64,000 nucleotides of DNA from Blastocladiella emersonii ATCC 22665 (GCA_025594325.1 JANHCV010000005.1:992001-1056000), one strand, 5' to 3'. Shown: positions 5,855 to 36,128, counted from the stretch's first letter. The notes: generated from the letters alone by a model not told the origin. Made by a program: numbers and translations.

Positions 5855-6799
5855 ATGTCCGACTCGGAAGACTATGCAAACGACCCGCCGCAGCGCGGCG
5901 CCCTGCCCGTCGCCCTGGTACGCCCCCCGCACCCACACCCGCGGGCGGCAACTGACCCCGGCGCGACCCAGTAGTACCCAGTAGGCGACCCGTCGCTCCC
6001 GCCCGTGTCGGGCGAAGAGTACCTGCGCCGCGTGCGCGAGGAGTCGCGCGCGCTCGGCCCCGTGCGCGTCGTCGCGCCAAGGCCCGACCTGTTCCCCGCC
6101 GCCACCGACGACTCGGTCGACGACGCACCACCATCCGGCTTCCCGCAGCCAGACGACCCCGCGCCCACCCTCGACCGCGCGTGGGCGGACCGCACCCTCG
6201 CCGAGTTCACGCGCCTGCACGCGCGGCTGCTGGCGACGCGCGAGGCGCGGGTCCCGCGCGGCCCGGGCGGGATTGCGTACACGAACTCGACCCCGACCTT
6301 GCCACCCGTCCCGTCGGACCTCGCCGCGCTCGCCGCCGAACTACCCGCGGCGCCACGCGCGCGGCCGCAGGACTGGCACGCGTTCCTGTACGGCGGCGCG
6401 GGGCAGCACGGCGGGTTCGGGTCGCCGCCGCTCGACGCGGGCGCGCGTGCGGTCTGGCGGCCGTCGATGCTGCTGCGGCTCTCGCACCGGTCGCTCGTGG
6501 CCGTCCTCGTCGCGCACCGGTACTGGATCACGCCCGCGATGCACCCCGCGGCGCTCGTGGTCCGCGCCAAGACGATTTACTGCCTCCTCGCCGCGCTCGA
6601 GCCGCTGCTCACGACGGATGATGTGAGTGGGATCCGCGAGATGGCGAAGCGGTGTGCGGCTGTGATGCGCGCACTCGAGGGGCGGCAGGGTGAGGGGGAG
6701 GAGGACGCGGTGAGGCAGGACGCGGTCGCCGGGCTCGGGATCGTGCTCCTCATCGCGAGCCAGCACCTCGGGCAAAAGGATTTGTGCGAGCTCGTCTAA
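5855..6799 (+). CDS. GEMIN2: Gemin2/SIP1 (SMN-interacting protein; Brr1-like); intron 5918-5974
   Basis: Exon 1 MSDSEDY..GALPVAL, donor GTACGC, branch ACTGAC; exon 2 has P-SGEEYLRRVREE, later IYCLLAALEPLLT-DD-S-IRE-A-RC and HLGQKDL. An alternative in-frame ATG lies at 5843. Confidence 0.85.
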
Positions 6800-6818: not shown

Positions 6819-6822
6819 AAAA
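6819..6822 (-). terminator. Putative RNA polymerase III terminator (TTTT)
   Basis: First T4 run on the minus strand downstream of both tRNA-like units; there is none in the 59-nt spacer between them. Confidence 0.55.
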
Positions 6823-6827
6823 GAGAC

Positions 6828-6940
6828 TGTGGAGGGAGGGATTTGAACCCCCGTCCGGAACTTTGAGCAATATGTAACGCGGGTCCCATCCGTTACATAT
6901 TGTTCAAAGTTCCGTGCGTGCCCAACTCCGCCACCTCCAC
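6828..6940 (-). ncRNA. tRNA-like RNA 1 (113 nt): tRNA acceptor/D/T scaffold with a 24-bp hairpin replacing the anticodon and variable arms
   Basis: GTGGAGG/CCTCCAC acceptor stem, A-box-like TGGCGGAGTTGG, D stem GCG/CGC, 24-bp stem with one mismatch and 11-nt loop, GAC linker, T arm GGGGG-TTCAAAT-CCCTC (B box), TTTT 6 nt downstream. Confidence 0.8.
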
Positions 6941-6999
6941 CTGTTCGCGCCCGCACGCCACGACCGACCCAAGTACTCACCGCCCAGCAACGTGTGTGA

Positions 7000-7125
7000 C
7001 GTGGAGGGAGGGACTCGAACCCCCGTCGCCGCTCCCGAAGGGGTGCCTCGCGGAGAAGGGACCCGTGGTTCTCCGCGAGGCACCGCCCGCGGGAGCGGCC
7101 GCGTGACCAACTCCGCCACCTCCAC
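7000..7125 (-). ncRNA. tRNA-like RNA 2 (126 nt): same scaffold with an unrelated 10+16-bp hairpin
   Basis: Same acceptor stem, D arm, GAC linker and T stem as RNA 1; T loop TTCGAGT; hairpin GCCGCTCCCG/CGGGAGCGGC plus GGTGCCTCGCGGAGAA/TTCTCCGCGAGGCACC with an 11-nt loop. Confidence 0.8.
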
Positions 7126-7380: not shown

Positions 7381-8365
7381 ATGACATCAAGCATTGACCG
7401 CAAACGCATCAACGGGCCCGAGCGCTCCGTGGTCCCGCTGCCGCTCGTGGCCGACGACGCGACGCTGTCGCGCGCCGTGCGCGTGCTCAACGTCCACGGC
7501 AAGCGCGCCGACGGCCGCGATCCCGAGGCCATGCGGCCCATCTGTATGTCGGGGATATCATCATCGCCAGTGCGACGACCATCGCGCTCACCCCCCGAAC
7601 CCCGATCCCCGTCGTCGTCTAGTCATGCAGACGGGCACGATCAGCAAGGCCGACGGGTCGGCGTACATTGAGCAGGCCAACACCAAGGTGGTGTGCGCCG
7701 TGTACGGCCCGCGGCCCGACCGCAAGATGACGGACCCGGACCAGGGCCGGCTCGCCGTCGAGTTCCGCCTCGCCACCTTCGCGCAGCCCAAGCGGCGCGG
7801 GTTCGTCAAGGACGTGGTCGAGAAGGAGTACTCGCGCGTCGTCGCCGAGGCCCTCAGCCCCGCCGTCCGCCTCGACTCGTTCCCCAAGGCCTCGGTCGAC
7901 GTGCACGTCACGGTCCTGCAGGACGACGGCACCCTCGCCGCTGTCGCTGCCGCCATCACCGCCGCGAGCCTCGCCCTCGCGGACGCCGGGATCGAGCTGT
8001 TTGACCTCGTCTCCGGCGCCGCTGCCGCGTTCGCCGACGACAACACGATCCTCATGGACCCCGCGGCCGACGAGGAGAAGCTCGCCCGCGGATCGCTCCT
8101 CCTCGCCTTCATGTCCAACGTCTCCCAGGTCTCGCAGCTCATCCAGTCCGGCAACGTCCAGGGCGAGACGGCCGAGGAGGCCATGGACTACTGCATCGAC
8201 ACGGCCGCCGAGATCCACACCCTCATGCAGGAGTGCCTCTCGCACGCGGCTGCTGCGGCTGCAGGGGCTGCGAGCGACGACGAAGAGGACGAGGACGCGA
8301 TGCAGGTCGTCAAGAGTGAGGCGGAGGACGCGATGGAGGTCGTCAAGAGCGAGCCATCCGCGTAG
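7381..8365 (+). CDS. MTR3: Exosome RNase PH-like subunit Mtr3/EXOSC6; intron 7544-7622
   Basis: N-terminal DRKRINGP, DGR-P-AMRPI|FMQTG-IS-ADGSAYIE, KVVCAVYGPR, FPKASVDV-VTVLQDDG, A-SLALADAGIELFDLV; GTATGT..CTAG intron restores the frame. Confidence 0.85.
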
Positions 8366-35263: not shown

Positions 35264-36128
35264 TGCGTTCGTGACGGGGTGTCAGTTTTGCAAGAGGTGA
35301 CGGAGCGGCGACGGGAGTTGAGAGCGGGTCCTCGCGCCCTTCGCGACGCGCCACCGCAGCCTTCGCCCACCAAACGGTCATGACCGACAGAAAGTAGCAA
35401 CACAACCCTCGATCCGGGCACACGTCCAGCAGCACAAAGTAGCAAGACGGGGGAGAGACGCAACAATAGTCTGTATTGAGTGCGCGCCGCCGTGAGGGGC
35501 GCTGCAGCATATTGCACTGAATAGAATGTCCCCGCTGTGGCCGCTTTCACTGTCACACGAGGCGACCGACTTGCTGGTGCCACACGTCCACCCGTGTTCC
35601 GCATCGGTCCCGAGAGACCGACGGCCGAGGAACAGACAGGCCTCCGCGAGAGGAACGCGCCCGAGGAGGAGGGACTCGAGGCGCGCAGGACGACGGGGTT
35701 CACAGACCTTCCCAAGGGGCGACGATGGCGAGCAACAAGGTGTGCTCCGAGTGTTTTCCCTTTATGCTGCTAGTTACATCTCTCGGGGACAGCGCGTGGG
35801 CGCGGGTGATCGCCCAGCTTTATAGCGCGGCGCCGCCGACGCGCGCGGCGGTCGGCGAGGGGAGCGCGGCGGCCATGTTCAGGAGCGCCCGGTTACGCAT
35901 CAGGTGATGGCGGGTGACCCGAAGCTGTCTCTCGCGCTCCACCGCGACCGCCGCCGCCGTCTCCCTGTCGATCCTTGGGCCCCGATGACCACGGCGGCAT
36001 TACCTGCTAGAGTGTCACCACACATACTTGCTACGAAGCACCTGTAACTTTACGCATCAAGCACCCCGGGAACCGCCCTCGACGACGATCAGCAGCCGGC
36101 CAACCACCACCGTGACCGTATTTCCAAG

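Follow-up and report, generated by a model that had tools for sequence, protein, structure and literature searches.

Which kind of RNA would keep the acceptor stem, the D arm and the T arm of a transfer RNA (tRNA) and carry a long double-stranded hairpin at the place of the anticodon arm? This question is raised by two neighbouring genes of Blastocladiella emersonii ATCC 22665, which lie on the minus strand of a stretch of 64,000 nucleotides (nt) (GCA_025594325.1 JANHCV010000005.1:992001-1056000); this whole stretch is called the window here, and all coordinates are positions in it. The tRNA-shaped anatomy with a long hairpin is real, statistically non-trivial and unusual. The reading that we favour, and to which we give an even chance of being right, is that the genes form a dicistronic RNA polymerase III (Pol III) pair that would encode selected, non-decoding tRNA-like RNAs, in which the tRNA core may serve as a processing and stability chassis for a double-stranded RNA (dsRNA) arm and the hairpin loops may dock onto each other. 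The two tRNA-shaped units lie on the minus strand between 6819 and 7125, with RNA2 upstream, RNA1 downstream and a spacer of 59 nt between them, and are composed of the following features.

7000-7125, minus strand: RNA2, the upstream tRNA-like gene, 126 nt
7119-7125 and 7001-7007, minus strand: acceptor stem of RNA2, with the discriminator G at 7000, the D arm at about 7101-7116 and the T arm at 7008-7024
7028-7099, minus strand: hairpin of RNA2, 72 nt, seen as an inverted repeat and by folding
7090-7099/7028-7037 and 7069-7084/7042-7057, minus strand: stems of the RNA2 hairpin, a basal stem of 10 base pairs (bp) and a perfect upper stem of 16 bp, separated by a 5x4 internal loop
7058-7068, minus strand: loop of the RNA2 hairpin, 11 nt, containing CGGGUCCC
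6941-6999, minus strand: spacer between RNA2 and RNA1, 59 nt, GC-rich, without any four-T run
6828-6940, minus strand: RNA1, the downstream tRNA-like gene, 113 nt, 42.4 bits with the Rfam tRNA model
6934-6940 and 6829-6835, minus strand: acceptor stem of RNA1, with the discriminator A at 6828, the D arm at 6916-6931 and the T arm at 6836-6852
6853-6855, minus strand: GAC linker of RNA1, 3 nt
6856-6914, minus strand: hairpin of RNA1, 59 nt, a 24-bp stem with a single A.C mismatch at pair 12
6880-6890, minus strand: loop of the RNA1 hairpin, 11 nt, containing GGGACCCG
6819-6822, minus strand: TTTT followed by GC, beginning 6 nt past RNA1, the likely Pol III terminator of the whole unit

Both units share a 7-bp acceptor stem (GUGGAGG/CCUCCAC), which is followed by U8 and G9, a 3-bp D stem (GCG/CGC) and a 10-nt D loop with A14, G15 and G18-G19. 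The T arm consists of a 5-bp stem and the loop UUCAAAU in RNA1 or UUCGAGU in RNA2, and the discriminator is a purine in both. The core nucleotides U8, A14, G18-G19, G53, U54-U55-C56, R57, A58 and C61 are kept in the two copies and a G15-C48 pair is possible. Tested for the hallmarks of a canonical tRNA, both copies show the acceptor stem, the G18-G19 D arm and the GTTCRANYC T arm, and neither shows a canonical anticodon arm, that is a 5-bp stem and a 7-nt loop with U33 and R37, accompanied by a variable region which is either 4-5 nt or long. The stem at this place measures 24 bp in RNA1 and about 29 bp in RNA2, its loop 11 nt, and the variable region is the 3-nt GAC; the hairpin is joined to the core by one purine on its 5' side (A in RNA1, G in RNA2) and by this GAC trinucleotide on its 3' side. 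An earlier, sequence-only reading of the window had given the sequence and the coordinates of both RNAs correctly, and the two unrelated, near-perfect hairpins with 11-nt loops that it described were recovered by a repeat finder and by folding. The repeat finder returned the scaffold halves as direct repeats (6916-6945/7101-7130 at 90% and 6829-6855/7001-7027 at 93%) and found inverted repeats at the hairpins, of 24 nt and 96% identity in RNA1 and of 16 nt and 100% identity in RNA2, each with an 11-nt loop. Compared with dinucleotide shuffles, the folds have z-scores of -8.1 and -7.6, and 0 of 200 shuffles fold equally well. Folded alone, the hairpins are predicted to have energies of -32.0 kcal/mol (RNA1) and -62.4 kcal/mol (RNA2), and if the cloverleaf stems are enforced both RNAs stay at 3-6 kcal/mol from the unconstrained optimum. 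In its design, the body comes nearest to class II (leucine-type) tRNAs. The leucine tRNAs of this class are also the ordinary tRNAs of the genome that resemble it most, with TGGC-GAGT-GG and a 3-bp D stem in common, and none of these is a close parent. A 3-nt variable loop combined with a lengthened anticodon stem is a workable geometry, as seen in tRNA-Pyl and in mitochondrial tRNA-Ser(UCN) (PMC7609411), and engineered tRNAs with a hairpin at the place of the anticodon arm show stability in cells and can give rise to small RNAs by processing (PMC9827509).

The comparison of the two copies bears on selection. The scaffolds match at 49 of 54 nt, as had been counted before, and the five differences fall on tRNA positions 20, 26, 57, 59 and 73, which are all unpaired and normally variable; purines are retained at 26, 57 and 73. 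The likeness reaches no further than the two ends of each gene, give or take about 5 nt, and hairpins, flanks and spacer are unrelated. In a recent tandem duplication the flanks would have been copied as well, and an old scaffold that was not under selection would have degraded, so that the pattern fits an old duplication with selection on the scaffold rather than a recent copy. Counted from the base of the hairpin, nine of the first ten pairs differ between RNA1 and RNA2 on both strands, and all of them are Watson-Crick pairs. The loops were known to share the motif GGG(A/T)CCC; the motif is present, but this description was incomplete, as one loop is, over 8 nt, the perfect complement of the other, GGGACCCG in RNA1 versus CGGGUCCC in RNA2. 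For random 11-mers the probability of a complementarity of at least 8 nt is about 5-9 x 10^-4, and shuffles of the actual loops reach at least 7 nt in 0.9% of the trials. The heteroduplex of the loops is predicted at -16.6 kcal/mol versus -11.3 and -10.3 kcal/mol for the homodimers, which contain a central A.A or U.U mismatch. We regard the loop complementarity as suggestive, i.e., as evidence for selection and not as proof of it, and since the loops could pair over 8 nt, the two RNAs may act as a heterodimer.

The claim that both RNAs carry A and B boxes was borne out by good matches to the consensus from the literature, namely the A box TGGCGGAGTTGG and the B boxes GGTTCAAATCC and GGTTCGAGTCC. 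As a reference for the flanks, 63 ordinary tRNA genes were taken from the tRNA clusters on contigs 1, 3, 8, 12 and 14, which yielded 53 distinct flanks. Nearly all of these 53 flanks have a T-run within about 10 nt, often in the form TTTTGC, and RNA1 is followed by gtctcTTTTGC, a terminator of the type found at ordinary tRNA genes in this genome. RNA2 is followed by no four-T run anywhere in the 59-nt spacer. On the 5' side, the flank is A/T-richer at RNA2, like that of real tRNA genes, and GC-rich at RNA1. With a terminator after RNA1 only and an A/T-richer flank at RNA2 only, one transcript is the simplest reading, and the pair is probably one dicistronic Pol III unit that runs from RNA2 through the spacer to RNA1 and ends at a single terminator.

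From these features we infer transcription, processing and selection of the pair, and the favoured reading of two non-decoding tRNA-like RNAs would work as follows. A single nuclear Pol III unit would comprise RNA2, the spacer, RNA1 and the TTTT. The upper half and the elbow of the tRNA are complete, which should make each RNA acceptable to RNase P, RNase Z and the CCA-adding enzyme, and a rigid double-stranded arm of 24-30 bp would stand in the place of the anticodon arm. The genes would be old duplicates, in which scaffold, arm pairing and loop motif were kept by selection and the arm sequence was fully turned over, and RNA1 and RNA2 may work together through the 8-nt pairing of their loops. 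As to the role of the dsRNA arm we can offer a guess, either a precursor of small RNAs or a platform or decoy for a dsRNA-binding protein. A more elaborate version, which we put forward tentatively and consider possible but doubtful, is a tRNA-chassis family in which a selected core would serve no purpose other than expression by Pol III, processing of the ends and stability, and the dsRNA arms would be interchangeable. In such a family, an equimolar pair from a single transcript would dock by an 8-bp kissing-loop contact into a rod of about 60 bp with tRNA-elbow caps, and this rod could feed an Argonaute pathway or titrate a dsRNA- or tRNA-binding protein.

Three whole-genome pattern searches (one for the 5' half that allowed 2 mismatches, one for the 3' half that allowed 3, and one with a looser pattern of D loop, gap and T loop) found only these two copies of the scaffold in the 32.6-Mb genome of B. 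emersonii. The hairpin arms have no further match in the genome within 3 mismatches, and being unmatched elsewhere they are neither repeats nor copies of a gene. Two scans of IMG/VR for virus-derived arms gave no exact match. The two RNA genes occupy the gap between Gemin2/SIP1 (plus strand, stop at 6799) and Mtr3 (RNase PH; plus strand, from about 7400-7625), and both are antisense to any 3' untranslated region of Gemin2. The Mtr3 protein is 100% identical to one of B. emersonii ATCC 22665, the Gemin2/SIP1 protein belongs to this strain as well, and the window is part of contig 17 of the assembly. In relatives, ARAGORN with introns and a T-arm scan detected no tRNA-like gene at the Mtr3 loci of B. 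britannica, Allomyces arbusculus and Catenaria anguillulae or at the Gemin2 loci of A. macrogynus and B. britannica. These locus negatives are weak and say little, because gene order is not kept and the species are distant, with Mtr3 being 60-67% identical. In A. macrogynus and B. britannica, Gemin2 is clustered with HCNGP, LSM, Rpp14, ATP synthase subunit F and a class II aminoacyl-tRNA synthetase. Gemin2 adjoins Mtr3 in B. emersonii versus this conserved cluster in both relatives, which means that a rearrangement of the region took place in the B. emersonii lineage. Elsewhere in the window, at 35453-35784 on the minus strand, lies a nuclear RNase P RNA gene (Rfam RF00009, 59.2 bits, E 1.9e-14), which matches the model over its full length and contains large insertions. 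A bacterial origin of the scaffold was considered and rejected: it has no match in 185,579 prokaryote genomes, and the body is about as close to the class II tRNA-Leu of B. emersonii itself. A metagenome scan with a scaffold-plus-gap pattern gave 12 matches, all of them ordinary bacterial tRNAs or 3' ends of transfer-messenger RNA (tmRNA) with a chance match upstream. Bacterial tmRNA 3' ends are among the matches on JACCDQ010952473.1 and JACCDQ010494134.1, two metagenome contigs; they contain GGACGGGGGTTCAAATCCCCCC, a sequence that is nearly identical to the linker and T arm of RNA1 and shows the tmRNA-likeness of this part of the scaffold.

Several points weigh against a selected, non-decoding pair. 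The locus is known here from DNA sequence alone and its expression is predicted. The selection argument is built on two sequences and the loop comparison was made post hoc. The distance between A and B box, about 70-85 nt, is above that of the ordinary, mostly intron-less tRNA genes of the genome. No near-perfect target of the arms exists in the genome, and no copy stands beside the Gemin2 or Mtr3 orthologues of the four relatives, a statement that covers those loci only. Finally, there are only two members in one genome. The sequence-only reading had spoken of a non-decoding tRNA-like class; the first part of this is supported in that no usable anticodon arm exists unless the RNAs are spliced, but the class amounts to two members in a single genome.

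The alternative that survives best, though we consider it unlikely, takes the genes as inert relics, i.e., as a former pair of tRNA genes with a palindromic insertion at each anticodon loop, non-functional and possibly not even transcribed. The confinement to one genome, as far as seen, and the lack of copies beside the orthologous neighbours in relatives would be expected from such relics. Moreover, since the GGGWCCC at the hairpin tip is itself palindromic as DNA, the entire insert forms a near-perfect palindrome that a fold-back event at the DNA level could make. However, two independent and unrelated palindromes would have had to enter two neighbouring copies at one and the same position. 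As neither palindrome is found anywhere else in the genome, they are not mobile repeats; a mobile palindrome or miniature inverted-repeat transposable element was rejected on the same ground, the uniqueness of the arms. Furthermore, the genome contains no intact parent tRNA with this body, all conserved core nucleotides and stems survive in both genes next to flanks that have diverged beyond recognition, and the loops have their 8-nt cross-match.

A second alternative, which we rate somewhat lower than the relics, is that the RNAs are Pol III-driven precursors of small silencing RNAs, in which a tRNA chassis would carry the 24-30-bp arm, a Dicer-type cut would release products of 21-25 nt and these would be loaded into Argonaute. 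The genome encodes four Argonautes, identified by their Piwi domain at about 300 bits each, and the stems of 24 and about 29 bp have a length suitable for Dicer (at least 21 bp). Engineered chimeras of tRNA and precursor microRNA (pre-miRNA) with this design do yield small RNAs in human cells, both Dicer-dependent and Dicer-independent (PMC9827509). Against this stands that Dicer would find no free arm end to measure from and that the genomic targets of the arms, for which the sequence-only reading had suggested a search, did not materialise: no site in the genome lies within 3 mismatches of either arm, a search that addresses near-perfect targets only. Two of the Argonaute matches (1404132-1405055 and 1586553-1587476 of contig 17) lie 182 kb apart and have identical scores and an identical open frame of 759 amino acids, which suggests a recent segmental duplication; the two further Argonaute genes are on contigs 11 and 20.

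Could the two genes simply be decoding tRNAs from which unusually long introns, 40-55 nt in length, are removed by splicing? We judge this improbable, slightly more so than silencing precursors, although several observations can be brought forward for it. ARAGORN without introns makes no call on either RNA. In intron mode it reports RNA1 as Ser(UGA) with a 40-nt intron and RNA2 as Pro(CGG) with a 55-nt intron at 31/32. As Ser(UGA), RNA1 would have its intron at the canonical 37/38 site, an anticodon stem of 6 bp and a variable loop of 3 nt, and it can also be read as Gln(UUG) or Leu(CAA). A call as intron-containing tRNAs had been named beforehand as a result that would refute the non-decoding class, and formally it is made; in a control, however, ARAGORN in intron mode (-i) also called a tRNA with intron in all 300 random perfect hairpins that were placed into the RNA1 scaffold, so its calls reflect the scaffold only and the Ser and Pro isotype labels were discarded. 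With the Rfam tRNA model RF00005, RNA1 scores 42.4 bits (gathering threshold 29) with a 44-nt insertion in the anticodon loop, and RNA2 is below threshold and not reported. Eukaryotic tRNA introns span 6-133 nt and the splicing endonuclease works largely as a ruler (PMC4090602). Directly before the 3' strand of the stem stands a heptamer, CUCAAAG in RNA1 and UUCGGGA in RNA2, which in either RNA has U33 and a purine at 37, and the sole helix irregularity of each RNA sits at this putative 3' splice site. The absence of U33 from RNA2, as claimed before, is thus true of the 5' strand only, and UUCGGGA on the other side is an anticodon-loop-like string. The coincidence of U33 and R37 has a chance of about 1/64 per model, and it comes to about 1 in 16 if the several models that were tried are allowed for.

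The geometry of splicing argues further against introns. No one canonical 37/38 intron suits both RNAs, as RNA1 requires a 6-bp stem for it and RNA2 accepts only 31/32 or 32/33. Splice sites of eukaryotic pre-tRNAs are typically single-stranded (PMC4090602), but the putative sites here are buried in a continuous helix instead of lying in single-stranded bulges, and no bulge-helix-bulge motif is present; both putative 5' splice sites fall within continuous helix, and the irregularities amount to one mismatch in RNA1 and one internal loop in RNA2. Moreover, a single shared body would have to serve two amino-acid identities with different anticodons. The genome already has a canonical tRNA-Pro(CGG), whose body is quite different, and among the 63 sampled tRNA genes introns occur in tRNA-Tyr(GUA) only and are 10 nt long, which sets the pair apart from the ordinary tRNAs of this genome.

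The remaining identities can be dismissed briefly. A eukaryotic counterpart of the tRNA-like domain of tmRNA, acting in ribosome rescue, is very improbable: a T arm that is linked through GAC to a long helix does resemble this domain and Rfam RF00023 aligns RNA1 end to end via a P2-like helix, the GGAC linker and the T arm, but the scores (34.1 bits for RNA1, 11.1 bits for RNA2) are below the gathering threshold of 47 bits, the alignment bypasses the true acceptor stem, neither a coding module nor room for a tag reading frame is present, and the reading is effectively refuted because the alanine identity pair G3.U70 is missing (the third acceptor pair is G3-C70) and SmpB (PF01668) was not found in the genome by a search that found it in 10 of 10 bacterial control genomes. 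Vault RNA was rejected as the genome has no match to the shoulder domain of the major vault protein MVP (PF11978) in a search run without a positive control, and MALAT1-associated small cytoplasmic RNA (mascRNA) reaches only 16.5 bits with its Rfam model. A primer tRNA of long terminal repeat retroelements was likewise rejected, as sites complementary to the 3' end plus CCA number 65 with up to 2 mismatches versus 54 for the reversed control, none of them exact.

How does the pair compare with known systems? The known tRNA-shaped non-coding RNAs include the tRNA-like domain of tmRNA, mascRNA, viral tRNA-like structures and the tRNA-miRNA-encoded RNAs (TMERs) of herpesviruses. In agreement with the sequence-only reading, no natural RNA of the present design was found described in the literature, and no report was found of a cellular gene with a full tRNA core and a long dsRNA hairpin for the anticodon arm; the nearest systems are laboratory tRNA scaffolds and the herpesvirus TMERs. 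With the tRNA-like domain of tmRNA the two RNAs share an acceptor stem and T arm that are linked via GAC to a long helix, and the lack of an anticodon arm. They differ from it by a real D stem, the absence of G3.U70 and of a reading frame, and a nuclear gene with A and B boxes. Vault RNAs, the virus-associated (VA) RNAs of adenovirus and mascRNA are small non-coding RNAs as well, either tRNA-like or made by Pol III, in which the terminal module is conserved and the centre varies. Two further likenesses are that the genes of vault RNAs are tandem paralogues and that adenovirus VA RNA acts through its dsRNA character, whereas VA RNAs are of viral origin and do not have a full tRNA core. Intron-containing pre-tRNAs resemble the pair in having a long insertion in the anticodon region that pairs with anticodon-loop nucleotides. 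Among them, yeast tRNA-Ile(UAU) carries a 60-nt intron. The closest decoding RNAs in terms of geometry are tRNA-Pyl and mitochondrial tRNA-Ser(UCN), which likewise combine a 3-nt variable loop with an anticodon stem of more than 5 bp, but with a 6-bp stem and a 7-nt loop as opposed to 24-30 bp and 11 nt here (PMC7609411).

The TMERs of murine gammaherpesvirus 68 also combine a Pol III tRNA-like promoter module with hairpins, and their tRNA-like part is non-decoding. Their hairpins, however, lie downstream of a complete tRNA-like unit and are freed by RNase Z, whereas the hairpin is internal here, and they are viral, whereas the present locus is a cellular one of a fungus. The likeness is greatest to the engineered 'tRNA scaffold' RNAs, reportedly described by Ponchon and Dardel in 2007, whose design is identical: a foreign hairpin takes the place of the anticodon arm, and the remaining cloverleaf is retained for enzyme recognition and stability. 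This is the design which bioengineers themselves devised for stabilising recombinant RNAs. In the tRNA/pre-miRNA BioRNAs, class II (Ser, Leu) bodies were found to be the best carriers (PMC9827509), and the body of RNA1 and RNA2 is nearest to class II Leu. The engineered scaffolds are man-made, whereas RNA1 and RNA2 are a natural nuclear gene pair with its own predicted Pol III signals and with complementary loops. Should the genes prove to be silent, the locus is an oddity left by the decay of tRNA genes. If they are expressed, they would give an entry to the small-RNA and dsRNA biology of the poorly studied Blastocladiomycota and a natural test of RNase P, RNase Z, CCA addition, export and aminoacylation on a grossly extended anticodon arm. 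They would then represent a natural co-option of the tRNA fold as a carrier of structured RNA, and the chassis family, if true, would be the cellular counterpart of the laboratory scaffolds and, more loosely, of the herpesvirus design.
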